A stretch of DNA of 64,000 nucleotides from Paraphysomonas bandaiensis (GCA_965644295.1 CBFFRP010000235.1:62001-126000), one strand, 5' to 3'; shown: positions 1-64,000, counted from the stretch's first letter. Notes: generated by a model from the letters alone, not told the origin. Made by a program: numbers and translations.

Positions 1-260
1 AGTTGCAGGATATACATACATTATCATGATATCGAGTGATGTTACATGAAGGAAATGAGAAGAGTGAGACTCCATACATTAAACACGTGTGTGTGTTAAT
101 TCATTGAATCTAGTTGATATGTTAGAGTTTGAATCTTCATCTCAAGAGAATCTGAACATGGAAGCTTGATGATAATAAGAATTAAATGAATACTCTACTC
201 TGTTGAGATGATTTAGAGATGCGTGGAATCTCATAGTTATGTATGGGACAACAGGAGGAG

Positions 261-406
261 GGGTGGTTGTGCACGTCCATTTTATAGATTTATTTCATTG
301 AAAAGTCATCATTTTTTCATTAAAAAGTCACTTTTTTTCACTTTTCACAGAAAAAACGATGATTTTTCAATGAAATAATTGATAAAATCGATATCCACAA
401 CCACCC
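261..406. repeat. Small foldback / MITE-like element with ~55-bp imperfect inverted arms
   Basis: GGGTGGTTGTG...TTATTTCATTGAAAAGTCATC (from 261) is mirrored by GATGATTTTTCAATGAAATAA...CACAACCACCC (to 406). No clear TSD. Confidence 0.6.
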
Positions 407-897
407 ACAGATACTGACACATGTAAACATCCATTATACAGATATTCCCTATACATATCACAAAATCCTTCATTTTTATATCATCGAAATGGAAAACACA
501 TCTTAAAACTCCCGAGTTTTATATAAACCAATGAATTCCTTGATATCCTTCAGCAAAAATCATGAATTTTAATACATTCCATATTTTTTGAGATGACGAG
601 TGGTCATCGTTCCACTCTGTACGTATGTATGTATGTATGTATGGCTGTATATATACACATATATATATACACACAGGAGTGTATAGTTAGAACACTCTCT
701 CTAGATAACAGCACAGTGATTAGCCATATATACAAGTGTTCATTATTTCATTATTGTTGATCAATATTCACATACTTTCATTACATTAACAGTATCTTAT
801 CATCATAAGAGCTGCTCATATATAACATTCACATACACTCTCATCACATATACATACATACATACACATCATCTTATAAGTATTCATCAGTATATAT

Positions 898-3800: not shown

Positions 3801-4014
3801 CTCAGAACTGCTTGGACCAATGGTTAGCGGCGAGAGGACCGCTGATTTGGAGGAGCGCATTAACTCAACACATGGAGAGAAGAGAGTACCAGTGCCTGGA
3901 GATTATGCAGTTGTTGAGGTAAAGGACGCCAAAGGACAAGTTTTGTACGGAAGGTCGTTAGCCATAACCACTTTAATGGATTTCCATCATCACATGGGAT
4001 CTTCACATGAATAG
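898..4014 (+). CDS. CDK5RAP1: CDK5RAP1/MiaB-type tRNA methylthiotransferase (radical SAM + TRAM), multi-exon, probable mitochondrial presequence
   Basis: Motifs across GT-AG exons: [57 protein letters not shown] (CxxxCxxC spans an intron), [46 protein letters not shown]. Stop at 4012-4014. Confidence 0.93.
1727..1862 (+). ncRNA. Intronic box H/ACA snoRNA candidate, copy 1
   Basis: Hairpin (CCAGACAC/GTGTCTGG upper stem, TGTCT/AGACA lower stem), H box ATATAA at 1785-1790, second hairpin, ACA at 1857-1859. Lies inside intron 1678-1959 and is nearly identical to copy 2. Confidence 0.75.
2943..3076 (+). ncRNA. Intronic box H/ACA snoRNA candidate, copy 2
   Basis: Same architecture, with H box at 3000-3005 and ACA at 3071-3073, in a later CDK5RAP1 intron. 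Differences from copy 1 are few and include a G-U/G-C swap in a stem. Confidence 0.75.
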
Positions 4015-4235
4015 ATATAGATCTATATTAGAATTTTAGGGTAATAATAATTGTCACGTATAACCACTCTGCATTGCCTACAATTTACCCTACATCCAAA
4101 GAAGATGCTAATCATTTTATTAACAGATAGGAATAGATACATTATTTCGATTTCAACACAAAACGTATTTAACTAGTGACACACAAAAATCTAATCACAA
4201 GGTACTAATTGGTTTCAAATCAATGCTACATATAT

Positions 4236-18491: not shown

Positions 18492-18960
18492 TATAAGAGG
18501 ATCCATATATATATAAGCCTAACAACAGACTGTAGTATCAACTAATAAATTAGTTGATTGTTTCTATACTAAACTAACTCAATTTCTTCTTATAAAACTG
18601 AAGATATTCTCATGAATAGATCTGAAAGTAGATCAAACTAAACATACAAACAAATCATTAAATATAACATAAAATATATATAACACACACCTCTTTACAA
18701 AGAAAATCACTTGATAGATATTCTCTATTAAATGATACCTTAATTCAAGTTCTTTAGACGATGGGGTGGTCTAGTTAATTCTCTATGCTATTATGAATAG
18801 TATTAACGACAATTTCTATATATAACAATCTTGTAATGATCTTTACGTACCTTTTCATATGAAAATATATACGTATTTTTTTATATGGTTTCTTACATAT
18901 GACAATCTTCGGTTTCACTTTTATTTTCATTGGTATACTGCTGTATTTTATACACATATC

Positions 18961-19155
18961 GTATATGCCCTATAAAAATACGCTGTTTTATATGAGGAAA
19001 ATATACTAGAAAACCCCCTTATATTTAGGAAATCAGGGATTTCTATATTCTCACTCGCCGTATATGCCCTATAAAAATACACTGTCTTATATGAGGAAAA
19101 TATACTGGAAAACCCCCTTATATTTGGGAAATCAGGGATTTCTATATTCTCACTC
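18961..19155. repeat. Tandem duplication, 2 x 99 bp
   Basis: GTATATGCCCTATAAAAATAC...TTCTCACTC starts at 18961 and again at 19060, with about 4 mismatches. Confidence 0.9.
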
Positions 19156-22490: not shown

Positions 22491-22989
22491 TGTGAGCATA
22501 TGTTTTTTTAAATGATATGGGTAGCGATTTAATTTCCCAGATCTATGTGCTTGTCTGTAGTGTAGTGTAGTGTAGTGTAATAATTTATCTTTATCTAGCA
22601 CAGAGGGCTCTTTTATTGGATATTGCGTTGTATCAATTTTGTATTTTAGCTTATTCCTGTGATGATTACTAATTACGATAGCACGTTATAATGTTCCCTT
22701 CGAACGCACCAGAGCCAGTAGGGTTAAATATTGACTACTTGATTACTACGTTACTTCGAAACTCCATCACGCTACTCGAGTAAACAATTATATCAGTTAG
22801 ATATGACTTATTAGTGCATTATCCTCCTAATACTCAGGGCTTGTCTTTAGTCAATTAAAGATTACACAGATATACTTCATGTACTCTACCCCTATCCAAT
22901 TATGTAGTAACCAGCTATCCGGTTATTTTATACTATATAAGCTCTCTATTGTATATGCTTAAGTTTGTACATACATACATACGTACATA

Positions 22990-24271: not shown

Positions 24272-27251
24272 ATGTCTCATCATCTCATATTACATACTCT
24301 ATTAACAATATTACGTGATTCTTATATATCCATCTCAACGGCATCATCTAGTAAGATATGGGGAAGTTCAAGTATAAGGTACACTACATACATACACACT
24401 CATATACATATATAACCACATACATACATACATATAGATCACTAAACATCATGGATATCATAGTGCTAATCAAGTTTTTATACCTGGAAATTTCGCTATT
24501 GCAATGGTAAGATTCTTCTTATACATACATACATACATACATACATACATACATACATACATCACTAACTTCTCTCTCTATTTAAACTATAGTCATATTT
24601 TTCTGTGGGATTTACAACATCATTTATGTCAACTCCATTAAATATATATCTTGTATCAACTCTCAATGCGGAACCACCAATGCAAACTACTATAGGAATA
24701 CTTCAAACACTTCCCTGGTCATTGAAATTAATATTTGGATTCATTAGTGATGTTTGTCCAATATATGGGATGCATAGAAAACCATACTTATCAATAGGGG
24801 CATTGATGTACTCATTTGCTTTGATGGGATACGCACTTTTGGGTATAAATAATGTTGTCGTATTGGCTCTCACATTGTTCTTGGCGACTATGGGGATGAT
24901 TATGATGGACGTCATGGCTGATACCATGGTATGTTATATATGTCTTTGTGTATTTCATCCTAATTAAAGTGTGTAGTGCGTTGAGAGATCTAGATTTGAA
25001 CCAGAAGACATACAAGGACAGATGCAGTCCAGCTACTACTCTATCAGATTTGCGGGTATTTCCCATGATATTTAGTGACATCAAAGCAGTTAATTTTACA
25101 TGATGTGAATACAGGTGCATTGATTGGCTCTGTTTTGGGAGCACTTGTCAGCAATAAAGATATATGGGGATGGGGACTTACTTTTAACCAGGTGGCACTC
25201 ATAACGGGATGTGTACCATTTGTCCTCGTTTGTCCGTTTCTATTCAGGTGAATATTGCTGCAATGATAGTTGACGTTTAACATTCATGAAATATACGCAC
25301 ACTATTTCTGTCTGGCACATTGAGTGCACAAATATGCGCACTATAATTTACTCTTGTAACCTATTCTTATTTATAGCCTTCGCGAGAAGTACCGCAAAGT
25401 GCCTCTTTCTCTCTCTGAGGGAGCATCTAGTGATATGATTGAGCTACCTCTGGATGAACGAGTACCCGTATATAACAGTACTGCCACAGCCATGTCAGTG
25501 ATGGAGTTAACAAAGATCGCATCTGCCCCGGATTTGGTATATCCGTATTCATATCAACGTGAGATATATATCGTTGGTTGTACTTTATTGATTATTTGAT
25601 TACGTATAGAGATATCTGGTACAGATGATGCTGAGGCTGCCATTCTAGTGCAGAGGTGCAAGAGCGATCTCACTATTCCAGTTTCCAATTTCTTTGAAGA
25701 TATTGATGAAGAAGATACCTCTGAGCTCTCTCCCTTGTCTAAGCAGTGTCAGGAGATATGGCAGACTGTTCAGCTCAAGTCTGTATGGAGACCCATGGTA
25801 TTATAGCACAATATACGTCACCATACCGTCAGATTATATCTGCAGAGTCTACACATGTGTACTATATATTGGCCACTACAATTGTTCCTTTTTTAATTGT
25901 TATATAAAGAATATAGGTGCTTGTGGTTCTAATAGTGTATATCAGTTGATTCTAAAGTTCGTATCAACATCTAACAATGATACACAGGCTTTCGTGTTTT
26001 GCTTTAATATGCTGCAAATCCCAAATGTAGCCTGGCAATCGTACCTCCAATTGACTCTACACTTCGAACCTTGGGTTCTGGTAGGTACTTCAGAAAGATG
26101 TTTTTTATTGTTCTAGTATATACTGTATGGTGTACATATGTGGTATATACAATTTAAAAATCACTGAATTAACACTTTCGTATTGAACATGAGTTGTAGT
26201 GCCACTTTATGTATTTCACATTTAATATTCAGGGAGCAATGGTTGTGGCTGGAAGTTTCATGACTTTTGCTGGAGTAGTGGCATATAAATATTTCTTCTT
26301 CAAGGTAACTTATTATGGAACCTTATGTTTAAACGACTGCATGTATCTTCATGTCCTAACGTGCTATTTTTAGACTTCGTGGAGGAAGATATACCTTTGG
26401 TCTGCTCTTTTGACTACATTTTTCTCGTTGCTACAATTGGTCCTTATTTTTCAGGTAGGAAAACTGGGAGGTGCATCTAGCTTGTATATTTGTATATAAA
26501 TTGTGCCGTACGTTTAGTAATATTCCTAACCAAATTATATAACAGCTGAACACTAAGTATTTCCATATAAGCAACTACTTCTTCTCTCTCGGAGATGATG
26601 TTATTACATCTTATATCAATGGTATACAGTTTTTACCGGTGCGTATGAGTCCGTCTTACAGTACGACTCGTTTCGCTTAACCAGTGCTTATGTTGTTTAG
26701 CTATGCATTATGTACATGAAGTTGTGCCCTGATGGAGCGGAAGGAGCTAGCTATTCCATGCTAACAACCTTCGGTAACATCGCCCTTGTTTGTGCCTCTA
26801 ACTTAGGTAACATCGTTGCGAGTTTTTGGTACGTTATTCACATTTTAAATTCTGATGTTTTCAAAATCATGCTCTATGGTATTTGTTGTTGCATGATTTT
26901 GTATATTTTTGTTTTGACACTGTGTCCTAGGTGCTCTGTTTAGCATACTGCTTCAAAAACCTTTAAATATATCTGATGGTACTATATTACAGGGATGTGT
27001 CCAACGAAGCTATGAGAGAAGGGGATACAGAAGGGTTATGGAGGCTCCATGTTTTCACTTCTGTTATATCCCTTCTTCCTCTTTGCTTATTATTCCTTTT
27101 ACCTCGTAATGAGGAGGAGCAGGAAGAGCTGCGTAAGAATGCCACCCGGTCCCGCAAGGGGGGTGCTGTGTTTTTAGCTGTATTGATTGGAAGTCTTGCT
27201 TGGAGTGTTGGGGCTGCTGGACTCAAACTCTATGAAAACTGGAGCTTTTAA
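24272..27251 (+). CDS. BT1 folate-biopterin transporter (MFS), multi-exon
   Basis: LPWSLKLIFGFISDVCPIYGMHRKPYL, DVMADTM|CVERSR, FLP|LCIMYMKLCPDGAEGASYSMLTTFGN; many hydrophobic helices. Start codon is inferred. Confidence 0.88.
24521..24562. repeat. (ATAC)n microsatellite in a 5' intron of BT1
   Basis: About 10 perfect units. Confidence 0.95.
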
Positions 27252-27969: not shown

Positions 27970-28929
27970 TTAGAGCTTGCTGGCATTGGCAATTTTAGCA
28001 AGTTCAGCGTCCAATTGTTTCTTTCTCTTATCTAACTTGGCAACAGTCTTAAGACCCATAATACCGCCGCCCCACTTACGAAGAACATTCTGATTGAACT
28101 GAGCACGGAAATTCTGTTGCAAAGTGGTAAGCTTATTGCTATCTTCCGGCTTGACGGATGTGAGGGCAACAACAGCACAATTCTTCTTGTGCACAAGAGT
28201 TCCAAGACGGCTCTTTCCCTTAACAATACAATAAGGAACATTCATCTTGCGACAAAGAGCCGGAAGCCACACAACCAGTTCAATTGGATCTACGTCATGG
28301 GCAATCACAACAAGAGATGCTTTCTTCTGCTCGATGAGAGTAGTAATGTGCTTAAGACCAAACTTAAGCACTGGCGGAGGGGTTCCAGCGGCAACGGCCT
28401 CACCAGCCGCAGCAGACGCGGCCATAGCTTCCAGGCGCTCTTTCTTGGCATCCTTGGTCTCGGGTTGGTATTTCACGAGGAGCTTCATGAGTTCAGCAGC
28501 TTGATTCTTATCCAAAGTATGGGAGAACTGAGCAATAGCTGGGGGCACCTTAAGACGCTGAAGAAGAACCTATGGACAAATGCAACATTAAACAATGCAT
28601 AACCAGAAAGAAAACATAATATATTACCTTCTTTTGACGTTGAATGCGCACATTACGTGGCCAACGAACAAACCTGGATAAATCTTTTCCTTTTCCCTGA
28701 AGAATAGAACGAAAGCCATTAATTTATGTCATTGCGGTAAGGCACCCGCTAATTATACCCGAATATCTCCTCCAATTCTGGAGTTTCTAGGCTTAGCCTG
28801 GAATAATGGGTTGGCAACTTTAGCCTTCTTGATTTCCTGCTTTCCGGCTTTGCTTTTAGGATTCTTTGCTGGCTGTTTATATAACAAATGAGTGAATTGA
28901 TAAGATAGAATATGAATATACTGTACCAT
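27970..28929 (-). CDS. RPL7A: 60S ribosomal protein L7a (eL8), 4 exons
   Basis: ATG|PAKNPK...NPLFQAKPRNSRIGGDIR, RFVRWPRNVRIQRQK, LKVPPAIAQF, VVIAHDVDPIELVVWLPALCRKMNVPYCIVKGKSRLG, WGGGIMG. Confidence 0.97.
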
Positions 28930-29532
28930 GATTAGTTTCTGTGACTTGATTGTTTGAATTCTGTTCAATGGAATTGTGAGAGTTAAAGAGATGCAATTCC
29001 TTGCAATGCAATGCATGCATGCAATCTCTTAACCACATATGATATACGTATCTTCAATAGTCACCTAGTTTTCAGTTCGTAGACCCAAACTACGATATAC
29101 AACACAATACACAAAAACCTACAATATACAGACACCAAATATAGGATTTTCGTATCTGGTTTCACCAAAAACCAGAAACGAAAGATTATGATATAAAATA
29201 TGGGTTTTTAGTTTTTGTAGAAGTTAAACTTATAATCTGGCGAAAGAACAACATGTTGAATTATCTCGATTGTTCTGAATAATATCTTTGATTGAAGGTG
29301 ATATTCCAACAACTGTCTCGATCTAGTATAAAAATATCCAGAATATAGAAAATTTCATATTAAAATCCATGATTTATATCTTTCGAAAGATAAAAACAGA
29401 CCTTTTTCTACAGAGTACAAGCGAGATGGAACAATTCCTTACATAGTTAAGTAAGTGTATGTATGTATGTATATATATATGAAGAGATGATTATATCAAT
29501 ACATTAACGACATATGAAACAATCTTAATAAA

Positions 29533-31489
29533 ATGGGAAATAAAACATCAATTATTCAAATATATTCATTACAACCATTAATAAAAAAATATAAATCATT
29601 ATATGATAAACTTGGATTAACAGAATCTGATATTGCTACACTCTATATCTATTATGAGAAAATAGACTTAGACAACACTGGTGTAGTGGATGTAACATCT
29701 GTGTTAAGTAGTATGGGTATACCGTCTAATATATTTATGACCCGGATATTTGGACTTCTCAATACAGTGTCCGGTAAAGATACAACTTCAGTGTCCGGTA
29801 AAGATACAACTTCAGTGTCTGGTAAAGATACAACTTCAGTGTCTGGTAAAGATACAACTTCAGTGACTGGTAAAGATACAACTTCAGTGACTGGTAAAGA
29901 TACAACTTCAGTGACTGGTAAAGATACAACTTCAGTGTCCTCTAAAGATATTTCAACAATAAGTTTTCATGACTTCGTCTGTTGTTTATGGAATTTTTGT
30001 TCTCTCAATACAATGCTACGTAAGTATCATATATATGATCTTGATGTGTATTGTGTTGATGTGTATTTTCAGTTATTGTTATAGTAATCTACTATATATA
30101 TATATATATCTGATATATGTTATATAGCAATGCTGGTATTTGATATGTATGATACTAATGGAAATGAATCATTGGAATGGTCAGAAGCACAACAGATGAT
30201 TGTAGAGATGTATGGTGATTCAAAAACAACAAACCGACAAGCAAACAGGTCAATACATATGCTAACTATACATTCACATACTATGCATATCCCTCTATAT
30301 ACATACTCATATATATATATCAGATTTAAAGATCAAATTGATCGTCTTGGAAGTCTTGGCATACAAAAACAATTCTTTACAGATTTTGCAAAGAACCATC
30401 CCTCATTTATCAAACCAGCATTAAATTATCAAAATAAAATACAAAAAATTTTTTTTGGTAAAAAATATTGGAAAAAAATTTCACTTATTCGAAATAAATT
30501 ATCCAATGATACTTATGAGAGTATTAATGTCATTATCAAACGATTGGGTCCAAAAAAGAGAAGAAAATCTCTACCCTCGAATGAGGACAGTGATAGTGAA
30601 GATGAAGGAATGTCATTGGATAAGCTGTTGAAGTTGAAGAGAAAAGCAGGACATTCATTTAATTCGAGTAGAACCCGCACTGCACGTCGCGATTCATTCA
30701 GTTCTGATAAAAATTCCGATAAAGGTTCCGAAAAGAATTCTGAGCGACATTCTGAAGAACATTCTATGCGATCTGCTGGCGTAAGCTCTTTGGTTGATTC
30801 AGAACCAGCGAAACCCAAAATTAGCCCGCTAACTGGAAAGTACAGAGGTACCATCAGTCGAGGTTCTTTTTGCAGCGAAAATTCACTATTGGATGATGAT
30901 GAACACGATAAAATGGATAAGGTATCTGCACTGTTGATGTATATAACAACTATCATGTTGAAATTTTTTTCACTTGTGTGGCTTGTGCTTACTAACTGAT
31001 TTACCACTATCGTTTGTACTTTGCCCTGTACAGTATAACTCTGTCCTGAAATATAGATTCTCAATGAAAGTACTGAATATGCCCATATTGTGAAAAGAGA
31101 GATTAAAAGGCGAAAGTCAATGGATCACATGAAGCCGAAGTCATCCAAATCGAAGTTGAAGTCTACAAATGAGGGGTATGATGGGTCTGATGAAAGCTGC
31201 AGCCCTCTGGTTAGAAGATGTAAGTTGGTTTACACCGTAGAGAATTCGATGCATGAGATTTGGTATACACTCTGTACGGTTTCTTTAAGTCAACATGCCG
31301 TATCAGAAACACAACAGCATATCAACAATGCCGTCGAAAGTGCACGTTTAAAATGCCAAAGCACTTTGTACTATATATCATATCCATACATATTACATGC
31401 ATATCTACATATTTTATATCTTTCTAACTGGCACGGTTTTAGCCCGGTCGCACTCACGACGCACCTTTCCTGCACCTGACAAGTACTAG
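29533..31489 (+). CDS. EF-hand (calcineurin-B/recoverin-like) protein with possible N-myristoylation and Ser-rich tail
   Basis: MGNKTS start; EF-hand loops IDLDNTGVVDV, TISFHDFVCCLWNFC, FDMYDTNGNESLEWSE; GT-AG introns; predicted end ...PAPDKY* at 31487-31489. Confidence 0.75.
29767..29958 (+). repeat. Coding 24-bp minisatellite (V-S/T-GKDTTS) x7 plus one degenerate unit
   Basis: GTG(TCC/TCT/ACT)GGTAAAGATACAACTTCA repeated in frame. Confidence 0.95.
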
Positions 31490-34100: not shown

Positions 34101-34218
34101 ATCCTTCTATATAGAGAGATGTGCAGAGATGGATGCGTGTGTAACAAAACTTGTTGGTAGTATGGCTATGGGGATTACAGTACAGCAGTACATACATACA
34201 TATCATCCCTCTACAACG

Positions 34219-34370: not shown

Positions 34371-35318
34371 ACCGTACCACGGTAAAATATCCTTGTTATT
34401 ATATCCACATATTTATTATGATCTGTTTTTTTTGTATATGGATAGTGTACTCTGATGTTATACAGCTGTATATATTGTATACAATGTTGGTGTAGTAATG
34501 AAGTTTCTTGGTTGACAATAAAACTTGAATTCTAATGAGGTAATTGTGAGATATTAACGATGTTGGGTTGAATGTGTACTGTGTCTACATCACTATTGTG
34601 TTAAATAGATGACAATATCTTCTACTTATGGCTCTAAACTTGATTAACTTATATATACATTGGAGCCTCAATACATGCATTCATATACATAACGGTATTC
34701 TAATCCCACAGTATTACACGGTATTCGGTATGTATTCTATCTTCACATGATAGTGTTCTTTTTGGCTATTGATATGAGTATACATATATATACGTAGCTT
34801 TCCTATACTAATAAACTCTACATACAACAACAGTACACGTATCGGTATTTTTCGGAAATAAATTGATATAAAAATCCTCTATAGTACTGCAGTACAACTA
34901 CGGCTATAATACAGATAATTATTGTCTCAATATTTGAGGCATCTTGGAACAAAAATATAAAAAGCATGCCGATTATAGCTACAGTTGAGAGAACATCTCC
35001 AAGTATTCAGTTGTGTGTATATGTACATCTTCCTCACAATTACGTACGCATACATACATACCCAACATATACATACCCTAACATACATATACATACATAT
35101 ACATACATACATACATGTTCACCTCACATCTCCTCCTTATTAATGCATACTCATATAACACACATATACATACATAAGTAACCATCATATAATCAATCAT
35201 ATGAATATACTTATTATTACTATTTAATCACACTAACATACATAGAAATACAATCGTTTAATTTCATTCAATCCTTCATATCAATTCAACTGTTTCATTA
35301 GATCAAACACCATCCACT

Positions 35319-42616: not shown

Positions 42617-44354
42617 TTAATACCATGCCACGTACATGACAGTTGCGGGTGAAGATTCATAAGAAGGCCGAGGTTTCTTCTTTACACTGGACATTAGCAT
42701 TTGATCCAAACAAGGTGTACAAGCTTGGTCACGGTCGATGTTGAATGCCCAGTCCATGTTGTGCCTCGCTGTAGATTGATACCACATTGGGGATGTAGAA
42801 AGAGGGTCAATGTTACCACATAGCTGAGATAAAGGAGTGCGTACACGACTAGAAGTCATCGTAATTGGAGTACTAGGCGTCTTTCCAGCCGAATAAACAC
42901 CAGGACTGGAACACATAGAGTGGAATTTATCTGTACACGAGAACTAATTACTTTCGTGTATAAAAGTTTAACAGATAAGACACATGCATAAAAATACTAC
43001 AACTGATGGCGCACTACTCAGTGCACTTCAAGTAAATCGTACCCATTGGTGTATTTTCTTGACCGCCTATACCACCAGCGTAGTCAGGGTACACAATATC
43101 TTCATGAAGCAAAGTTATGTCAGAAAAAGAGGAAAATAGCCGCCCAAATGCTGTTGGAGATAATACGAAACTGTCTAAATCGCTACTTGAATTCGCGTCT
43201 GGAAGTGCGCTTAGATGATGAGGTATATGACTTTCAACGGGTTGCTTCCGCTTCGTCGCAGTGTTAGGATGCAGTGGCACTCGACAATCCCGACTAGCTC
43301 TTTTAGGTTGAGATGCTTCTGTATCCCCACCTTCGGTGGAGTTTGTTCTGACAGAAAAGATTTCCTTGCTGACATTAGTGGAAAGACTTCCAGGATTCTC
43401 GCTGAGAGATTTTATACGCTTCGTTTGGCGTCGTCGCCGCTTGTTAAAATGAACCTCTTCAAGCATTTTTGGGATGTGCTCTCGCCCTGTAATTACCAAA
43501 CCATGCACTTATCAATTCCGTAATCCTCTGATATATATGTACACCTACCGTAAGTGAATTCAGAGGATTCAGAGTCAGCGTTGAGGCCCCTGATGTATGG
43601 CGCGTATGTCAAATTCCACCTGTTCTTTACGTCGTTATCAGTCCTTCCTGGAAGCTGCTTTGAAATTTCAGCCCATTTGTTTCCCATCTGAACGTGTGCC
43701 TGACAGGAAAAGATTAGAGTACATACTAATCACTTCAATTAAAAAATACTCATCTCACCTCAAGTAATTTTTGATCCTCCTCCATAGTAAACTTGCTGGT
43801 TTTGAGGTGTGGCTTCAAATGATTAACCCAGCGCTCTCGGCACTGCTTTGTAGTTCTATTCGGTATTTTTACTTTCCTCCATTGAACTTTATTAGGGTTT
43901 GCTGTAGATTGAACAGCATTGCGCAATAACTCATCTTCCTATCGTAAAGAAACATTGTACTAAACATCACTACGTATATAGTCCGCATATATCATAATCC
44001 ACCTGTTGAGTCCAGGGGCCTTTAGTGATATTCGGATCTAATACTTTACTCCATCGGTGAGAACATTGAATGGCAGTCTTCGATCCTCCAAATTCACGGT
44101 TGACATCCTCCGCCACCTCCTTCCAGTGTTTGTATCTGTAGTGAGCAGCAGATCTCTTTAGCACTTCATCCTACATATAAACGATTATATCTGTTATACA
44201 TGCATCCAGCAGTACATACACATGGACAGACAAGTAAATCTATCATCCTAAGAAGTTATCTTACCTCTTCTTTTGTCCAACGGGTACGTACAGTCGATCC
44301 TGGAGTCATACCAGTCGATTGTGTGGATTGAGAGCTATCTTCAAAGTGATCCAT
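42617..44354 (-). CDS. Three-repeat (R1R2R3) MYB transcription factor
   Basis: RWTKEE|DEVLK..HWKEVA..QCSHRW; KGPWTQQ|[21 protein letters not shown]; [12 protein letters not shown]|[29 protein letters not shown]. Confidence 0.92.
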
Positions 44355-44567
44355 TGCACAGAAATGCTCCGGAGGGACTTCTTTAGTAGGGAAAGTTATT
44401 ACATCACAAAATAGTGCAATCAACACGATATTATAATAATGATGCTTGATTGCTTCCTATATACATATATATACACTCCAACTCCAACAAGAAATATCCA
44501 CAAAGAAACACCACACCATTTTAGCCGTTGACTTGATACCTCACGAGCAGCAGATACAAGTAGGTAG

Positions 44568-44658
44568 ATGTGTGTATGTATGTGTATGTATGTATGTATG
44601 TATGTATGTATGTATGTATGTATGTATGTATGTATGTATGTATGTATGTATGTATGTA

Positions 44659-44689
<31 letters not shown>

Positions 44690-44863
44690 ATGTATGTATG
44701 TATGTATGTATGTATGTATGTATGTATGTATGTATGTATGTATGTATGTATGTATGTATGTATGTATGTATGTATGTATGTATGTATGTATGTATGTATG
44801 TATGTATGTATGTATGTATGTATGTATGTATGTATGTATGTATGTATGTATGTATGTATGTAT
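44568..44863. repeat. (TATG)n microsatellite, left flank of the retrotransposon (~295 bp, short TG interruption)
   Basis: Read directly from the sequence. Confidence 0.98.
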
Positions 44864-45055
44864 TGTGGCATGAAACTCCTAGTTTTAGGGCTGGGAGTTT
44901 CTTTCCTTCGGGAAACGTGGGGTTTCCCTTCAGGATACGGTAGTCTAGTGGCTGTAGTTTCATGCCAGACTAGTCATACATGATTCTTATATGCATAATA
45001 ATCATTATATTCCTAGTCAAGGCCTTTTCTTGTTGTCTCGCGTAGTTCCATCACA
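44864..45055 (+). repeat. 5' LTR (192 bp)
   Basis: TGTGGCATG...CCATCACA; identical by eye to 50971-51162. Confidence 0.97.
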
Positions 45056-45076
45056 ATATCGATATTTGAACGAATT

Positions 45077-48000
45077 ATGACTAGACGCACGAGAAGTGCT
45101 AAGAGAAGTGAGGAAGAGAAGATAGAGGAACGGGATCAAGAGGAACCCATGGCTTCCACCTCGAGGGAGGAGGAGGAAGAGGCAGTAGTCTCTAGTTCGG
45201 AGCTTCCAACGCAGAGGGTTGCGGAGGAAGAGTCATTAACTACTCCGAATGTGGAGGTAGTGAATGAAGGAAATCAAGGAAATCCAGAGGGGGAGTCTGG
45301 ATGGGAAGTGGAGACTTGGGCTGCGCTGGGAGAAGCGACAGTCGATGAAGAGGGTTTGTCACTTCCTCCAAACTCTAGTTCTGAGCGGGAAAGGGTTGAC
45401 CCGCAGAGTGAGGAGAGAAGGATAAAGATCGCCCGAAAGAGGGAGATTAGGGAGAAGATTAGGGAGAATAAGGAATGGGAGGCCTCTAGAAGGAGCAGAG
45501 AGTCTCCCAAAGGGGGGGAGGAGAGGAGTTCCTCCGAGGAATCTGATAGGTCAGAGAGATCGAGGGAGAGATCTCGCAGTTATTCCGACTCCGGGGGGGA
45601 GGAATATGAAGAGCGGGGAAGGTCCCGCAGGCGCTCTTCCTCAAGGAGAGAGGAGTATTATGAGCGGAGTGGGAGATCGAGAAAGGGACGATCGAGGGAT
45701 CGAAGTAGTAGATCCTCGGGTAGAAGATCGAAAAGATCTCGTCGCGAAGAGAGCTCCAGAAGGTTGAGAGCCTCTGAGCTAGAATTGGAAAGTCTGCGGC
45801 AAGAGGTGCAGCAGTTAAGGTCGTCGTTGGAGGGACAGCGTTCGACGGGAGGGGACAGGTCCGGAGGAGCACCTGCCATACCGCAACAAAGCAGTATAGG
45901 GAGGGCAGAGGAAGCTAGCTCGTCCAGTAGTACCCTCCTGGTTACGTCTAATGACGTTCCTCCATTAGTCGCGCTGACTTATGACGCGGTGGAGGATTAT
46001 ATTGAGAAGTGTCGCCTTTACTTTCACAAGAGTGGTGGGAGAGAGGTAGACCGATCGCTAATCTCGGCCAAAATGGCGGCGAAGATAGACTTTATGAGGG
46101 GAGACGTTAACGGGAAAGTTGACGACTGGAAGGATCCGAAGGTGTTACCGTCGGAGGATTTCTATGCGTTCCTTCGTAAGATGGTGAAGGATCAGGGGCA
46201 TGTGGAGGTAGTGGAACCTTTTCAACATATTCGCGAGTGGGCTCGCGAGGTTCGCACCTTCCGGAATGTCAAGGATGTTATGGACTGGGGTGCGGACCTC
46301 AAGTTAAAATTGGAAAAGGAGGAAGGATCCGGCACATGGGAGGAGAATAAGGTTTGGATCGAAGATTTCAAACGTTCCCTCCGGATTGATCTTCCGTTCC
46401 ATGATCAGGCTCGAAGGAACAGATTTCTGACTGAGAAGGTTCAGCCCATTTTTGAGAGTTTGTCAGAGGACAAGCGAAATTTGTTGGGTTATTTGACGGC
46501 CTTGCACAAAGCCGTTACAGCTATTAGGGATGGCTGGGAGGCTGTGGGGCCTTTTGACTTATTTGTGGCAAGGCAGTGGCCCCGAGGATCGATGGGGGGA
46601 CGATCCGAGGCTGACCAACGGGATCGGAAGGGGGCCGATCAACGGGAGAGAAAGCGCACGCATTCACCTGCGAGGAGTTCGCAAGGGGGTTCGACTAGTG
46701 CTGGAAAAGCGCCAAAGAGAGCAAAGAGTAGCTCTCAAACGGATGTGTCAAAAGTGCCAGATTCAGATCGATGCAATGTGTGTGGTCGCCCAAGGGAGTG
46801 GCACAAGAGTGCGGAGTGTCCACTTAAGCAAGCTGCGGGGGCGAACTTGGATCCAAACGTAAAGTGGAGAGAGTGTGCAGTGGCTAAGGATATTTTGGCC
46901 AAGAGGGGTCAACATACTTTGCCTAGAGAGGGATGGGTCTTAAGGCAAAGCGGTTCATATGGAAAGGGCTCCAAGGGTGAGTCCCATGATGTGTATTCTG
47001 ATGTTATGGCTATTATGGCCCTTAAGTCTTTTTCTTCATTGCCATTCATAACGGTTGTTGTATGCAATGAACAGGGAAGGAAAAGGACATGTAAAGCTCT
47101 ACTGGATACGGGTGCGTCGGCTAACTTTATTAGTAAGGATGTAGCTGAATGGTTAGTAGATAGTGGTTCTATTCCTATTCCCGTAAGTAAGAATATTGCT
47201 GGGGGTTTTAAATCAGCAAGTGCTTTGTGTGAGAGGGGTGTGTCCCTCAATGTAGAGATCTTTACGGAGGTAAAGGAACCTCCAGTGTTGCAAGCTCGCA
47301 TAGATGCATGGGAGTTAGATCTAAATTTTGAATTGATTTTAGGGGTACATACTGTACGTAATTTAGATTTAGTAGTGCAGTGCCCTAGTGCTTTCATGAG
47401 CTCAGATAAGGCTCGAAGGGTAGCCGACGTAGTGGGAGACAGTGCATTCCCTCTTGCGAGAGAGAGAGATGATCAGTCCGGGGGAGCAGTGTCTCCGAGC
47501 CTTGGCGTGCACGCGTCTTACCCTTGTGGGGGGGAACGAGCCAGCGTTCGTCTTCCATTGCGTAAAAATTATAATCTTGAGGTTCGAGGGAAGTTGGCCC
47601 CTCTGGAAGTAGGAATCAGTGACAAAGGGGAGGATTGGTCGTACCCAGCGGAGGAACAGCTGCTTTCGCTGGGAGAAGATCTTTCAAATTTCTCAAAAAG
47701 GTCGGCATGGGACCGAGAGGATATGAAAGAAATTCGCAACGATCAGTTGGAATCCATTGACTCTGATTATCTGGACTCGGAGGGTGAGTCTCCTACGATT
47801 CCGGAAAAGGTTTATGGGTCACCGGACTTACAAGAAAAGATTCGTGGGGTCCTGGTGAAGTATAAGGACATCTTTCGATTAGAAATTCGGAAGGGAAAAC
47901 CCGCGAAGTTAGAACCGTTTGAGCTCGAGGTCCGGAACCCGGAGGAAACGTGGTTTATACCGGCAAATAAATTGCCTCCTAGGAGGTTGGATAGGAGTCG

Positions 48001-50755
48001 ACAGAGGGAACTCCAGCGTTTAGTGGAAAAGTTAGAGCGGTTGGGAGCGATACAACCTAGCTCGGCCACACATTATAGTCATCCTTTTGTAGTACCTAAG
48101 CCGAATAATAAGTGGCGATTGGTGTTGGATTATAAGAATCTCAACAAGGTTACTACCTCTGAAAGCTGGCCAATTCCGAACATTAGGGATATGATTTATC
48201 GGATTGGTGAGAAACGTCCTAAGTTCTTTGTAGTGATGGATCTCACGTCTGGGTATCATCAGGCGCCAGTGGGCGAGAAGTCCCGTGCCTGGGTCGCCTT
48301 TATTACTCAAAACGGGGTGTACGAGTGGCTCCGGCTCCCCATGGGTTTGAAAGGTGCCCCATCCTACTTCCAGCGGCAAATGCAAAGTGTTGTACTAGCG
48401 GGTTTAGTATATAAGATTTGTGAGATATACCTCGATGATTGTATTATATTTGCTAGCTCGGAAGAGGAGCTGATTGAGAATTTATCAGCAGTTTTAGAGA
48501 GATTTAAGAGGTTTGGCCTTACAGTTAACCCTAAGAAGTGTGTCTTTGGGGTCTCGGAGGTAGAGGCTGTGGGTCATAAGATCAATGAGTTTGGTCATAC
48601 CTTTACTAGAGAGCGGATTGATAGTATATTGGCTATCCCGCGTCCTAATACCCAGAAACAGTTGAAACAGTTCATGGGGGTAGCAAATTTTGTAAGAGAT
48701 TGCGTACGCGAATATGCACTGATTGCAAAACCATTGCATGCAATGTTGGGGAATTATACTAAGTCGCAGGCTCGACGTAAGGTGTTGCACTGGACAGAGG
48801 AGTCCAGTGTTGCCTTTGATGTGCTAAGGGAGCGCATTCATGAGTGTCCCTTGTTATTTTTTATGGATGATGTTTCCCCCATCTTCCTATATACTGACGC
48901 GTCAATAATTGGTATAGGGGCACACTTGGTGCAAGTCGTGGAGGGTCACGAGCGCACAATTGGGATGATTAGTAAGGCGTTCGACTCAACGTTAGCTAAG
49001 TGGCACACCTGCGAGCAGGAAGGTTTTGCCATCTTTTATGCTTTAAATAAGTGGGAATACTTGTTGAGGGATCGACGTTTTACAGTTCGAACCGATCACG
49101 ATAATTTACGTCAACTCAAGCAGGAGTATGGCCACATAAAACGAGTGCAGCGCTGGTTTATGTGTTTTCAGTCGTTTGATATCGTGTTCGAACACCTTCC
49201 AGGGGAGATGAATGTGGTGGCTGATGCTCTTAGTCGAGTTTGTGGGGTGGACGCATCCGACGAGGTCGATGACAATCTGTGTTCTTCTCTCGAGCGGTGC
49301 CTGGAGGAAGAATCGCATACTGAGGATCAGCGCATCCCTAATCACTTCTGGAAGGCAATTAAGGCTTGTCATAATAGTGTAGTAGGCCACCATGGGGTGG
49401 AACGTACAATGGGAAAGTTGCGAAGGAGCAACAATAATTGGAAGAACATGCGTCAGCATGTTATACGTTTTATTAAGTGTTGTGTGTGTTGTCAAAAGAT
49501 GTCAACTATTAAGCCGGCAGTGTGGGTTCGGCCTTTTACTCTATCTAAGTATTCCATGGGTGAGTGTATCTATATGGATTATATCGAGGGTTTGATTCCC
49601 GATGAGTATGGGTATACTAGCATTCTGGTGATGATTGATGCCTTTTCACGGTGGGCTGAGTTATTTCCTACCAAGGGTATCTCAGCAAAGGACACGGCAC
49701 GAGCGTTGTTGCATTATTTTGGCCGATTTTCGATGTGTTCGATTTGTAAGCTCACTTCAGATAAAGGGAGGGCCTTTATGTCCGATATTGTTCGGGAGGT
49801 GAGATCTTTGTTAGGGGTGGAGCACTCCTTTACAGTAGAGTATTCAAAGGAGGAGAATGGTATGGTTGAGAGGGAGAATAAGGAAATTCTCCGTCATCTG
49901 AGGAATATTATTTTCGAGAAAGTGGTCTTGAAAAATTGGTCTGATGTGCTGCCAATGGTGCAGCGGATTTTGAATGCGGCAATCCATGGGTCGACAGGAG
50001 TGGCCCCAGCACAATTAGTATATGGAGATGCCATAAACCTAGATGCAGGCTTTATTTTAGATAGGAAGAATTTGTCTCCAAGGGAGGAGAAGGATCTGTC
50101 CGAGTGGGTGGCAGATAGACTCGCAGCTCAGGAGAGGGTGCGAGTGTATGCTCGTCAGAATCTGGAGATTCGGGATCAACACCATATCGAGTCCAATATG
50201 CCCGAGGGTGTTTCGTCGTACCCGGTGGGGGCATTTGTGCTAGTGGAACACAGGCATAACTCGTTACGGACAGGTCCAACGAGCAAGTTGTTGCCCTATT
50301 TGAAAGGGCCTATGGAGGTGGTTGGTGTGGAAGGACCAATTTACACCTTGAAAAATTTAGTGTCGAGAGGACAGGCACGGTATCATATATCTAAGCTGCG
50401 GCCTTTTTGTTTTGATCCGAGGGTGGATGATCCCGTACAAGTGGCGTTACGGGATGACGTTGAGGGTACCAAGTTTGTGATGGAGAAGATTACAAACATG
50501 AGGGGCGACCCTAAGGGTTCGCGGTGGGATTTGTTCTTTGAAGTATACTGGTCAAATTACGATGTTCCGACGTGGGAGTCGTGGAAGACAGTACGAGGAA
50601 CAGATGCGTTATTGAAGTACTTGAAGACGCACTCTAGTTATACAGTACGAGCCCTATTACCCAGGAGAGGGAAGAAGCGCTCCAGGTCTCCAGACACGGC
50701 GGCAGAGGAAGTCATTTCAAGTGAGGATGAGTCGTCGCAACAGTCAGGAGTTTGA
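45077..50755 (+). CDS. Gag-Pol polyprotein (Gag-PR-RT-RH-IN-chromodomain), 1892 aa
   Basis: Zn knuckle CNVCGRPREWHKSAEC; protease LLDTGAS; RT WRLVLDY, DLTSGYHQ, PMGLKGAP, YLDD; RNase H YTDAS; integrase H..GHHG..CCVCC, MDYI, TSDKG, ENGMVER; GPM motif; chromodomain MEKI...FEVYWSNYDVPTWES. Confidence 0.97.
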   Translation: MTRRTRSAKRSEEEKIEERDQEEPMASTSREEEEEAVVSSSELPTQRVAEEESLTTPNVEVVNEGNQGNPEGESGWEVETWAALGEATVDEEGLSLPPNSSSERERVDPQSEERRIKIARKREIREKIRENKEWEASRRSRESPKGGEERSSSEESDRSERSRERSRSYSDSGGEEYEERGRSRRRSSSRREEYYERSGRSRKGRSRDRSSRSSGRRSKRSRREESSRRLRASELELESLRQEVQQLRSSLEGQRSTGGDRSGGAPAIPQQSSIGRAEEASSSSSTLLVTSNDVPPLVALTYDAVEDYIEKCRLYFHKSGGREVDRSLISAKMAAKIDFMRGDVNGKVDDWKDPKVLPSEDFYAFLRKMVKDQGHVEVVEPFQHIREWAREVRTFRNVKDVMDWGADLKLKLEKEEGSGTWEENKVWIEDFKRSLRIDLPFHDQARRNRFLTEKVQPIFESLSEDKRNLLGYLTALHKAVTAIRDGWEAVGPFDLFVARQWPRGSMGGRSEADQRDRKGADQRERKRTHSPARSSQGGSTSAGKAPKRAKSSSQTDVSKVPDSDRCNVCGRPREWHKSAECPLKQAAGANLDPNVKWRECAVAKDILAKRGQHTLPREGWVLRQSGSYGKGSKGESHDVYSDVMAIMALKSFSSLPFITVVVCNEQGRKRTCKALLDTGASANFISKDVAEWLVDSGSIPIPVSKNIAGGFKSASALCERGVSLNVEIFTEVKEPPVLQARIDAWELDLNFELILGVHTVRNLDLVVQCPSAFMSSDKARRVADVVGDSAFPLARERDDQSGGAVSPSLGVHASYPCGGERASVRLPLRKNYNLEVRGKLAPLEVGISDKGEDWSYPAEEQLLSLGEDLSNFSKRSAWDREDMKEIRNDQLESIDSDYLDSEGESPTIPEKVYGSPDLQEKIRGVLVKYKDIFRLEIRKGKPAKLEPFELEVRNPEETWFIPANKLPPRRLDRSRQRELQRLVEKLERLGAIQPSSATHYSHPFVVPKPNNKWRLVLDYKNLNKVTTSESWPIPNIRDMIYRIGEKRPKFFVVMDLTSGYHQAPVGEKSRAWVAFITQNGVYEWLRLPMGLKGAPSYFQRQMQSVVLAGLVYKICEIYLDDCIIFASSEEELIENLSAVLERFKRFGLTVNPKKCVFGVSEVEAVGHKINEFGHTFTRERIDSILAIPRPNTQKQLKQFMGVANFVRDCVREYALIAKPLHAMLGNYTKSQARRKVLHWTEESSVAFDVLRERIHECPLLFFMDDVSPIFLYTDASIIGIGAHLVQVVEGHERTIGMISKAFDSTLAKWHTCEQEGFAIFYALNKWEYLLRDRRFTVRTDHDNLRQLKQEYGHIKRVQRWFMCFQSFDIVFEHLPGEMNVVADALSRVCGVDASDEVDDNLCSSLERCLEEESHTEDQRIPNHFWKAIKACHNSVVGHHGVERTMGKLRRSNNNWKNMRQHVIRFIKCCVCCQKMSTIKPAVWVRPFTLSKYSMGECIYMDYIEGLIPDEYGYTSILVMIDAFSRWAELFPTKGISAKDTARALLHYFGRFSMCSICKLTSDKGRAFMSDIVREVRSLLGVEHSFTVEYSKEENGMVERENKEILRHLRNIIFEKVVLKNWSDVLPMVQRILNAAIHGSTGVAPAQLVYGDAINLDAGFILDRKNLSPREEKDLSEWVADRLAAQERVRVYARQNLEIRDQHHIESNMPEGVSSYPVGAFVLVEHRHNSLRTGPTSKLLPYLKGPMEVVGVEGPIYTLKNLVSRGQARYHISKLRPFCFDPRVDDPVQVALRDDVEGTKFVMEKITNMRGDPKGSRWDLFFEVYWSNYDVPTWESWKTVRGTDALLKYLKTHSSYTVRALLPRRGKKRSRSPDTAAEEVISSEDESSQQSGV

Positions 50756-50934
50756 TCTATGAGTTTTGACGGTTAGAATCCGCTCTGTCCAGGTGATGGA
50801 CACCTATGAGAAGGTTCTCATACATCACAGTTTAGTTGGAGTGATCAGTAGGATAGTAGGGGTGATTTTTGTGGGTGTTGTTTTTTTGTTGCTAGAATGT
50901 GTCGTTTTTTAGTTCATGTGCCACATTTTTTTCC

Positions 50935-50970
50935 AAAAAAAAAAAAAAAAGAAAAAAGGGGAAGGGGTAG
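50935..50970 (+). promoter_or_regulatory. Polypurine tract
   Basis: A-run then GAAAAAAGGGGAAGGGGTAG immediately before the 3' LTR. Confidence 0.9.
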
Positions 50971-51162
50971 TGTGGCATGAAACTCCTAGTTTTAGGGCTG
51001 GGAGTTTCTTTCCTTCGGGAAACGTGGGGTTTCCCTTCAGGATACGGTAGTCTAGTGGCTGTAGTTTCATGCCAGACTAGTCATACATGATTCTTATATG
51101 CATAATAATCATTATATTCCTAGTCAAGGCCTTTTCTTGTTGTCTCGCGTAGTTCCATCACA
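50971..51162 (+). repeat. 3' LTR (192 bp)
   Basis: Identical to the 5' LTR. Confidence 0.97.
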
Positions 51163-51397
51163 GTATGTATGTATGTATGTATGTATGTATGTATGTATGT
51201 ATGTATGTATGTATGTATGTATGTATGTATGTATGTATGTATGTATGTATGTATGTATGTATGTATGTATGTATGTATGTATGTATGTATGTATGTATGT
51301 ATGTATGTATGTATGTATGTATGTATGTATGTATGTATGTATGTATGTATGTATGTATGTATGTATGTATGTATGTATGTATGTATGTGTGTGTGTA
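51163..51397. repeat. (TATG)n microsatellite, right flank (~225 bp, then TG units)
   Basis: Read directly from the sequence. Confidence 0.98.
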
Positions 51398-51507
51398 GGT
51401 AGGTATGTGGGCTGTCATCCGTTATTGTTGTTATTGTTGTTATAGTGTGTATATGTAGCAGTGTCTCAGTGGATAGTGTGGCACATGTACTCACCCTCAA
51501 TCTCAAT

Positions 51508-52603
51508 ATGATAACACACCTCTCCATATTCATCCCTCTATCCCTTGCAGTAGTAATTACCATATATGCAGGTATCTATTACCTCTCTAAGCGCACTCTA
51601 TTGGCACTCTATACAGAGAAGTATACCTCACTATCAGCCTCTGATAAACACGCTACACTGCATGAAATTGCCTCTACTTTTGCTGTCATTGCAATATTCA
51701 GTGCATGTACAATAGGTGTATTTTCCTTATACAATGGAGTTGAAACGTATGCTCTCATTAGCTCTTAAACGTCCCACTAATTGCGGTATATGCATGACAG
51801 GAGGTGGACTGCACAGAATATGGCATCTTATTGGGGGATTATACTAACATTAGGTAATAGAATCATTATTATGGTATACTTCCTTATTTTTTTTGTGTGG
51901 AGGTTATACATCTTATGAGGAAATTTTATATCTTATAAATGGCAAAGAGAAAATATATCATTTTCATCATGCTCTTGCAGCGTTGATATCAATATACGCA
52001 CTGGTATATCCACGATTACACTTTTTCATATGTTGGGGTGGTACAGTGGAGATTACAGGAATATTTGTTAATGCGTTCTTTCTTTCTCGGCGCTTCAAGC
52101 TTTCGTCATTCTGGACTAATATTTTTGGTTTCTTGATGTGGCTCTCATTTCTCACCATTCGTTTCATTTCAATGTCGCTGCTAGTCGTTGTTGTAGTAGA
52201 CGATGCTCTCTCTACCTCTATTCTTAGTAGAATATCTCTTCCGTATATAGTTCTCGTCGTGGTGTCATTTTTATGTCTGTTTGCCCTGTCGGTATTTTGG
52301 CTGTACAAAATGACTCTGGGCCTACTCAAATTATTATCGTCGAAAGTGGTCCCTGTAGTACATGATGGAGCGAGCCGTAATGATAATGGACAGCAAGCTG
52401 TTGAGCACGTAGAGGTCAAGAAACCTACAGATATAGAAAATGGGGAACAGAAAACTGTGCTGAGTGACCCTGAGCCACGGAGGCCCAGCGAGGGGATGTT
52501 ATATGAAGAAATTCCTGAGATTGTATCTGTTGATTCTGGGTGTGGTTTGGATATGCCAACTGTTATAAGTTTCTATGCCCATCTCTTTCGACGCAAAAAG
52601 TAG
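51508..52603 (+). CDS. TLC (TRAM/LAG1/CLN8) domain membrane protein (3 exons)
   Basis: Hydrophobic helices; GYTSYE, YHFHHALA, VEITGIFVN, WLSFLTIRF, LSVFWLYKMTLGL fit the TLC pattern. Confidence 0.8.
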
Positions 52604-58511: not shown

Positions 58512-59162
58512 ATCCCTATCTAAGTAAAGGAGGGATGATGGATGGATGGATGGATGTGTGTGTGTGTGTGATTAGATTGATATGATATGATGAAGTAGGA
58601 GATTCATTGATAGACTTATCTGTGTATGTTTCATATGATGTGATCTATGTATATATATATATGTATGTATGAATTGTAATGTATAGAAATTCACGTTAAA
58701 ATGCTCTTTTTACTAGAGTTTGAAGTCATATCAATGGTGCGTATGGATGTGTATGTATATGTATGTGTATGTATGTAGTGTAGAGTAGATGTGATCCGGG
58801 AAATAATGGGGTCGAAATTTTCAGTAGACGGTATCTATATATACGGATTACAATCCGTAGACGGATAGAAGATGTGCTCTGCTGTACTGTTTACGGATCT
58901 CTGTATACGGTAGTTCAGATACGGATAGTTCCCCGATTTACCTTCGGTATACGGATATCTAGATATTGCCACACGTAATTACGGATCTTACCGAGCTGCT
59001 ATGTGGAATGAAACTATCGTCTATCTTAAGAACAAGATTGACAATAATGTCAATAGAATTCATCAATGTGATATAAAGAAATAGCATGTAGTTATGAAAG
59101 ACTTGAGTCACATTGTCCACATACCATTCAAATCACTTAAACCATCAGAAATATAAAGTATG

Positions 59163-59490
59163 CGTATTGGCATCCTTTGTATATTTTTGTTCCAAAATGC
59201 CTCTATTATTGAGACAACAATTATCTGTATTCCACCCGTAGTTATACTACAGTAATATAAAGAATATTTGCTTCAATATATTACCGAAAAAATAAGATGC
59301 TGACTGCCGATACGTGAGTATACTGAAACATAACAATCGTATTGGCATGCTTTGTATATTTTTGTTCAGATATGCCTCTAATTTTGAGGCAACAATTATC
59401 TGTATTATAGCCGTATTTGTACTGCAGTAATATAGAATATATTTGCTTCAATTTATTTCCGAAAACTATAATGCTGACTGCCGATACGAT
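59163..59490. repeat. Tandem pair (~174-bp period) of dispersed repeat B
   Basis: CGTATTGGCAT.CTTTGTATATTTTTGTTC...ATGCTGACTGCCGATACG occurs twice. Confidence 0.85.
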
Positions 59491-63488: not shown

Positions 63489-64000
63489 ATGTAATGGATT
63501 CTATTCCCTACTTGCCAAATGGCTTGTGGGTTATGATTATTATATATATATATATGGTTATATTTTCTATGGGATGATAATGAATGTATGTGTATATGTA
63601 TGTGATATGTGTGTGTATGTACTGCGTGTGTGTATGTATGTATATGGAGGTGTGTGTAACATATAACGATATTGAGAATACTTCAAATATAAAGTGAGTT
63701 GATATGATTGGTTTAGCAGTAAGATCTATATACAGAGTACGGGTATACTGGGATAGGTACAATAATACGGTGTGATAGTAGGAATTCTATAGGATAGATA
63801 TGAGTGAGATGGGACCGTATGTGGAGAACTTCCAACCCACACCACTCAACGTGATGTACTGGAAAGTCATAGAGAGAGAGGTACACACACATATAGAGAG
63901 GTACGCAAATAGATAGGTACACACATATATGAATAGGTACTTACATAGTCACTACATAAAAGTACATATCATCCATCCATAAGTACATATTATCTTCAGT

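Follow-up and report, generated by a model that had tools for sequence, protein, structure and literature searches.

An intact Ty3/gypsy-type retrotransposon with a predicted chromodomain lies within a long (GTAT)n microsatellite of Paraphysomonas bandaiensis

The window analysed here is a 64,000-nucleotide stretch of the genome of Paraphysomonas bandaiensis (GCA_965644295.1, CBFFRP010000235.1:62001-126000), with positions counted from its first letter. At 44864-51162, on the + strand, it carries a Ty3/gypsy-type long terminal repeat (LTR) retrotransposon of 6,299 bp, lodged inside a long (GTAT)n microsatellite in the space between two divergent genes. The 5′ LTR (44864-45055, +) and the 3′ LTR (50971-51162, +) are both 192 bp long, begin with TGT and end with ACA, and are identical at 192 of 192 aligned positions. 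A single gag-pol open reading frame (ORF; 45077-50755, +) encodes 1,892 amino acids with no stop codon and no frameshift. An earlier note on this DNA had described the LTRs as identical and the reading frame as uninterrupted, and both descriptions are borne out. The bounds of the LTRs are further backed by related elements, whose contigs are labelled L001-L021 (L009-L021 representing a sister family): in L001, L005, L007 and L012 the purine tract likewise ends before TGT, and in L006 and L009 an identical 13-nt motif comes after the ACA end. The polypurine tract itself, recognised from its sequence and from the tract end common to relatives, occupies 50935-50970 (+), immediately upstream of the 3′ LTR. 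Within the LTR, a 12-nt inverted repeat (nucleotides 3-14 versus 93-104, corresponding to 44866-44877 and 44956-44967, and also present in the 3′ LTR) begins 2 nt from the LTR 5′ end and shows one mismatch in the LTR of L012, from the sister family. The coding strand of the element also has a strong GC skew of +0.23 to +0.27 (window 44001-52000), unlike the host flanks.

Both flanks of the element consist of the same simple repeat. Tandem Repeats Finder delimits the left (GTAT)n tract at 44568-44863 (296 bp, 74.5 copies) and the right one at 51163-51408 (246 bp, 61.5 copies); each has a degenerate outer edge, and the left tract contains one GT-run interruption. The repeat adjoining the LTRs is perfect, with (GTAT)48 at 44672-44863 on one side and (GTAT)56 at 51163-51386 on the other. 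The two halves share strand and phase, are pure beside the element and degenerate outside, and are both unbroken alternations of purine and pyrimidine. With the element removed, the tract would measure about 538 bp, with about 103 perfect units at its core. Elsewhere in the window, no GTAT-class run exceeds 40 bp (24521-24560), and together the runs beyond the locus amount to 208 bp, in keeping with the earlier claim that the tracts at this locus far exceed any others in the window.

At the junctions, the 5′ flank ends with GTAT (44860-44863, +) and the 3′ flank starts with GTAT (51163-51166, +), forming a putative target-site duplication (TSD) of 4 bp. The five-base ends of the two flanks differ, so that a 4-bp TSD fits and a 5-bp one is excluded, as had been proposed, with the proviso that in a period-4 repeat a 4-bp TSD is indistinguishable from one of 8, 12 or more bp and that an in-phase match has by itself a chance of 1 in 4. 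TSDs of Ty3/gypsy elements usually measure 4-6 bp. The tract most likely pre-dated the insertion, because a pure centre with degenerate edges is the usual shape of a single old microsatellite (PMC3547029). The opposite order of events, with the element itself driving the growth of the tract, was also considered. Such growth could come from rounds of insertion, as the earlier note suggested, followed by loss, or from an expansion that started at the element's ends. Every insertion does add one GTAT unit, and the tracts do far exceed others nearby. Yet no solo LTR or LTR fragment lies in or beside the tracts, the addition of one 4-bp unit per event cannot make about 130 units, and the degenerate outer edges around a pure centre again speak for one old microsatellite. 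The suggestion that repeated insertion expanded the tract is therefore not upheld, and we regard element-driven growth as barely credible.

An assembly artefact, by which the element was misplaced or the tract lengths were inflated by the assembler, deserves consideration. Short reads cope poorly with perfect repeats of 192 and 224 bp, and permuted or tandem arrangements are frequent among the metagenome contigs of relatives. Against this, the degenerate edges through which the two tracts pass into unique sequence differ from each other, the left tract has an interruption of its own, and the element is bounded by clean junctions with canonical LTR ends. We consider such an artefact very improbable.

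The tract and its element separate two genes transcribed away from each other. Upstream, on the - strand, lie the 5′ exons of a 3-repeat MYB gene (43493-44354, start codon at 44354), three exon ORFs of which (43493-44164) match Myb_DNA-binding or Myb_DNA-bind_6. Downstream, on the + strand, lies a TLC-domain gene (51508-52603), the TLC ORF of which (51893-52603) matches TRAM_LAG1_CLN8 with an E-value of 5.9e-08 over 51893-52600; a possible first exon starting at ATG 51508 has no Pfam match of its own. The exons of both genes were searched individually, not as joined gene models, and their domain matches confirm the divergent MYB and TLC pair between which the insertion had been placed. With the element removed, the tract fills about 60% of the roughly 850 bp between ATG 44354 (-) and ATG 51508 (+). 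The 3′ LTR points towards the TLC gene, whose ATG lies 346 bp away.

This position upstream of coding sequence is shared by the other GTAT-type repeats of the window. All 12 other GTAT/ATAC-class runs, which form eight clusters, lie no more than 400 bp upstream of an ATG-initiated ORF reading away from them, compared with a background of 0.44, in a crude test based on ORFs of at least 80 amino acids that were called mechanically and are not gene models. In this genome, GTAT-type repeats appear to mark the 5′ regions of genes, and for the present window the earlier statement to that effect agrees with the 12 of 12 runs found upstream of ORF starts. The runs outside the locus are located at 623-642, 850-865, 22968-22979, 24385-24560, 29456-29471, 34189-34200, 35049-35114, 58660-58777 and 63631-63642, with no fixed strand.

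The assignment of the element to the Ty3/gypsy type follows from the order of its Pfam domains, its catalytic motifs and the identity of its best match in the PDB. Specifically, the domains of the polyprotein are arranged as protease, reverse transcriptase (RT), RNase H and integrase. The aspartic protease region (47084-47248, +) shows a weak Asp_protease_2 match at residues 670-724, with D-T/S-G motifs at 675 and 693. It is followed by the RT (48092-48583, +; RVT_1, 4.6e-28, residues 1006-1169), in which YLDD was found, by RNase H (48791-49177, +; RT_RNaseH and RT_RNaseH_2, residues 1239-1367), and by the HHCC zinc domain and catalytic core of the integrase (49352-49846, +; Integrase_H2C2 at 1426-1475 and rve at 1495-1590, with the HHCC motif). 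Among solved structures, the polyprotein is matched best by the Ty3 Gag-Pol (7q5b, E 1.7e-86), and the Ty3 RT (4ol8) is matched with an E-value of 4.9e-70. The N-terminal stretch of about 670 amino acids preceding the protease (45077-47083, +), presumably Gag, is rich in R, S and E and belongs to no recognised family: no Pfam match was obtained at E<=10, no CCHC knuckle emerged from a motif scan, and a profile built from five relatives found no match in the PDB. This region is open in the window element, and in the relatives it is present but poorly conserved.

The unbroken frame and the identical LTRs likely reflect a recent insertion, the age of which is only loosely bounded. Zero differences over 192 positions translate into an upper bound of about 1.6% on LTR divergence (95%, rule of three); LTRs of 192 bp are short, giving low age resolution, and the bound is one on divergence and not on years. 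The earlier designation of the element as "very young" is likely to be right, within this loose bound. In the sister family (L009-L021), pol is broken in every contig, with one to four frame changes and zero to seven in-frame stops per contig in the available parts, whereas the window copy has none.

The integrase's C-terminus (50465-50662, +) appears to be a divergent chromodomain, as judged from the profile of its relatives and from its predicted fold. The Pfam Chromo profile gives no match on the window protein, even with the C-terminal 303 amino acids at E<=10, but it is matched by four of six aligned relatives (best 2.4e-09), and the C-terminal region of the window element aligns well with its relatives. 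Profiles of the C-terminal alignment of these relatives match only chromodomain chains in the PDB, namely MPP8 (4.5e-06 to 9.7e-06), CDY/CDYL, Clr4, CDYL2, plant CMT, cpSRP43, Swi6 and HP1. The structure predicted for 50465-50662 (pLDDT 92.4) comprises three strands and a helix. In Foldseek searches with this model, nearly all of the best 49 matches listed are chromo or chromoshadow domains, and the remainder (ZMET2, Chd1 and EMSY-HP1) are chromodomain-containing proteins or complexes; TMq ranges from 0.41 to 0.65 across these 49 and from 0.47 to 0.61 in the top ten, with weak E-values (0.04 and up) for what is a small domain. An earlier two-domain structure model had given weak fold matches only and was set aside; the model of the trimmed domain is clear. 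In the alignment, F, W and Y occupy the columns corresponding to the three aromatic-cage positions of MPP8, which is the group I pattern. The chromovirus label attached to the element at the outset holds in the structural sense, through the profile of the relatives and the predicted fold, and does not extend to a call by Pfam Chromo on the element itself.

The region following the 5′ LTR is unconventional. No TGG was found after the 5′ LTR, so that a tRNA-type primer-binding site was not recognised, and a tRNA scan and an Rfam scan of the window yielded no tRNA gene and no Rfam match. Instead, the LTR is followed by the 13-nt motif introduced above (45056-45068, +), the first 10 nt of which form a perfect palindrome and which is likely an unconventional primer-binding site. 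The motif is common to the window element, L006 (2501-2513) and L009 (2619-2631) and is kept across relatives down to 46% identity. A complement of the motif was looked for in the LTR, and none was found. Self-priming was considered separately and rejected: the 9-nt complement involved sits 20 nt from the LTR, in the wrong position.

The window holds no second copy of the element, no solo LTR and no LTR remnant. The exact polyprotein has no record in the protein collection, and no copy of the same family was found in the protein collection or in the metagenome, genome or viral contigs reached. A protein scan of bacterial and archaeal genome contigs gave no match. Two nucleotide searches produced candidates that were rejected: a 21-nt LTR-end scan of metagenome contigs returned one match, attributed to chance, in a bacterial-type contig, and a 16-nt LTR-start pattern, which proved too short, returned 127 loci in genome and viral contigs, all 127 of them chance matches. 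The closest full-length relatives, from marine and other metagenomes, are 40-58% identical from the RT to the C-terminus. The sister family, recovered with the C-terminal 303 amino acids from Tara Oceans and other marine metagenomes, shows 79-85% protein identity and about 77% DNA identity.

None of the relatives' contigs examined contains a clean junction between LTR and host DNA. L012 aligns with the 3′ untranslated region, the purine tract and the first ~100 nt of the LTR of the window element and stops inside the LTR. Among the distant relatives, the contigs L001, L002, L004-L006 and L008 end in an LTR or are permuted or tandem; L005, L006 and L008 are either circularly permuted or contain two tandem elements with a common LTR. 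Such arrangements are probably an assembly effect of identical LTRs, true tandem arrays being the alternative. Two relatives do have some flanking sequence, and neither lies in a GTAT tract. In L007 (40% identity) the 3′ flank is non-repetitive, and a 52-bp satellite forms an array of 4.7 kb that begins about 1.5 kb beyond the 3′ LTR start; the 18-kb contig of L007 also contains a tandem duplication of about 1.2 kb of RT pieces within 1-8133, and the satellite occupies 11795-16469. L009 is rearranged: after the end of pol it enters another repeated sequence, common to L020 and L021, which is followed by an LTR-end/motif junction identical to window positions 45053-45068, by AT-rich DNA, by a host-like copper-chaperone-type gene and by (ATAC)13. 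This (ATAC)13 run stands at the end of the contig, about 80 bp from a gene start and about 0.55 kb from the LTR-end junction across the gene, placing the junction near a tract and not inside it. In sister-family copies, similarity is lost near the pol C-terminus (L009 1903-3224, L020 3380-3770 and L021 2660-3050). As L007 and L009 are distant or rearranged relatives, their flanks say little about the family of the window element.

These data bear on why the element came to lie where it does. Under one model, the C-terminal chromodomain would recruit the integrase to the long repeat by binding methylated histone H3 there, as proposed for the fungal element MAGGY. In its favour are the predicted chromodomain fold with all three aromatic-cage positions, the nearest solved matches, which are readers of histone H3 methylated at lysine 9 (H3K9me; MPP8, CDY, Clr4, Swi6 and HP1), and the location of L007 about 1.5 kb from its 4.7-kb satellite array; by analogy, the group I chromodomain of MAGGY binds H3K9me2/3 and was proposed to steer integration (PMC3350952). 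However, the site is the shared promoter of two genes and not obvious heterochromatin, and the chromodomain of Tf1 plays a different role (PMC3350952). Chromatin tethering of this kind appears quite improbable at the present locus.

A second model is strict microsatellite targeting, in which the integrase, alone or with a host factor, would recognise (GTAT)n and insert at a fixed phase. The insertion is in phase, its TSD equals one repeat unit, and its position is in the tract's pure core, the tract being by far the longest in the window; moreover, microsatellite-specific elements do exist in other classes (PMC3706591, PMC5907723 and PMC4486113). On the other hand, there is a single insertion, the literature searched gave no microsatellite-specific LTR element, and, according to PMC3706591, sequence-specific targeting is almost confined to non-LTR elements. 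Also counting against strict targeting are the 0.55 kb separating L009 from its (ATAC)n run, the non-repetitive 3′ flank of L007 and the lack of any additional DNA-binding domain recognised by Pfam in the polyprotein. A preference of the family for GTAT repeats is not demonstrated, because only one copy is within reach, and we consider strict targeting unlikely.

Chance offers a simpler explanation: the family would insert more or less anywhere, and this copy happened upon the region's largest simple repeat. Leaving the element aside, about 1.3% of the window (746 of ~57,700 bp) consists of GTAT-class runs, the split tract alone contributing about 0.9%. The share is low, yet it is not trivial once many windows have been read, and the locus was singled out for looking striking. 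In addition, a pattern would require further copies or solo LTRs, of which the window has none, and the relatives with a flank lie outside such tracts. Conversely, landing in such a repeat would be roughly a 1-in-100 event under even insertion; the location deep in the pure core and the match between TSD length and repeat period also point away from chance, although neither adds much beyond that 1%. We therefore treat a purely accidental landing as possible, if somewhat unlikely.

The reading we tentatively favour, at a confidence that stops short of even, is a loose bias towards gene 5′ regions, towards bendable DNA of alternating purines and pyrimidines, or towards both, acting on a large pre-existing tract. 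What the sequence shows is an autonomous Ty3/gypsy element with a chromodomain-type integrase tail that landed, most likely recently, in the middle of one (GTAT)n tract; the integrase joined its TGT...ACA ends to the target with a stagger of 4 bp, at T|G steps, so that one GTAT unit was duplicated and the phase of the repeat was kept. Under the favoured reading, the site would have been chosen by the loose bias and not by a strict, family-wide sequence specificity. GTAT runs would be kept where the bias points, in gene 5′ regions, and at this locus they would have offered an unusually large target. A preference for gene 5′ regions would often meet GTAT repeats, because such runs sit upstream of ORF starts. 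The tracts provide unbroken purine-pyrimidine alternation, and the relatives with a flank, lying outside GTAT tracts, are also in line with a bias that is loose. As background, Drosophila gypsy, also with a short duplication, prefers YRYRYR sites, interpreted as bent DNA (PMC9427105, citing Dej 1998), and it has been proposed that transposable elements, LTR elements included, land in microsatellites of unusual DNA conformation (PMC3547029 and PMC12477314). Several points weigh against this loose bias. There is one insertion only, and a single event cannot demonstrate any bias; with about 1% of the window made of GTAT-class repeat, the landing could be fortuitous; the ORF-start test depends on mechanically called ORFs; and the flanks of L007 and L009 come from distant or rearranged relatives.

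Comparison with known systems places the element in familiar company while exposing its peculiarities. It resembles Ty3 of Saccharomyces cerevisiae in domain order, LTR plan and the top structure match for RT, RNase H and integrase. Ty3 makes a 5-bp duplication, has a tRNA primer site, lacks a chromodomain and is tethered to the start sites of RNA polymerase III genes. The window element, by contrast, has a duplication of 4n bp, the unconventional post-LTR motif and a chromodomain-type tail. Drosophila gypsy is an insect errantivirus with an env gene and belongs to a distant lineage. Its likeness to the window element, a short duplication in alternating purine-pyrimidine DNA, concerns a working principle only, drawn from one insertion here (PMC9427105, citing Dej 1998). 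With group I chromoviruses such as MAGGY of Magnaporthe (PMC3350952), the element shares an integrase C-terminal chromodomain, predicted to have the fold of HP1, MPP8 and Swi6 and to retain the three cage positions. It differs from them in a chromodomain too divergent for Pfam Chromo, in its chrysophyte host and in a Gag without recognisable capsid or zinc knuckle.

Tf1 of Schizosaccharomyces pombe (PMC3706591) is likewise a gypsy-type element with a chromodomain integrase that inserts in Pol II promoters, and the window element lies 346-510 bp from two start codons. Targeting by Tf1, however, operates via a host DNA-binding protein and has no tie to repeats, and Tf1 self-primes, whereas the window element has no such complement. 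Fixed-phase insertion into simple repeats is known from microsatellite-specific non-LTR elements (R1-clade and others; Kojima and Fujiwara 2003/2004, as cited in PMC3706591) and, inside simple repeats, from the Mutator-like (MULE) DNA transposons SaTar (PMC5907723) and MuTAnT (PMC4486113). Those systems involve an endonuclease or a transposase and many copies, in contrast to an integrase and one copy here. Overall, the window element is a further member of the gypsy/chromodomain kind, unusual in its 4n-bp TSD, its 13-nt motif and its unrecognisable Gag. A search for literature on transposable elements of Paraphysomonas found none.

Elsewhere in the window, a ribosomal protein eL8 exon (27970-28545, -) is 96% identical to the Paraphysomonas transcript MMETSP1103 (taxid 36769), a match that puts the host with the chrysophytes, near Paraphysomonas. 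The block at 2001-18000 has a higher GC content (0.41-0.44), negative GC skew and long minus-strand ORFs rich in S, R and E without Pfam matches, and may represent a large gene restricted to this lineage or an old piece of mobile DNA. Tandem repeats occur at 18960-19155 (99 bp, two copies), 29765-29950 (24 bp, 7.8 copies, inside the ORF at 29533-30084) and 59163-59488 (175 bp, 1.9 copies).

Strict (GTAT)n targeting, if true, would make this the first integrase-bearing retroelement reported to target a repeat in a sequence-specific manner, inserting with a 4-bp stagger at one phase of (GTAT)n and with promoter repeats serving as landing pads. If the family does prefer (GTAT)n, an integrase-based element would join the non-LTR elements and DNA transposons known for repeat-specific targeting, and would provide a natural case for integrases reading DNA shape or chromatin. 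Regardless of targeting, our survey brings to light an undescribed lineage of gypsy elements with a predicted chromodomain, present in chrysophytes and marine metagenomes and endowed with an unusual conserved post-LTR motif. At the locus itself, a fresh insertion splits the promoter shared by the MYB and TLC genes and may alter the expression of both; the TLC gene, which the 3′ LTR faces, may be affected by that LTR.

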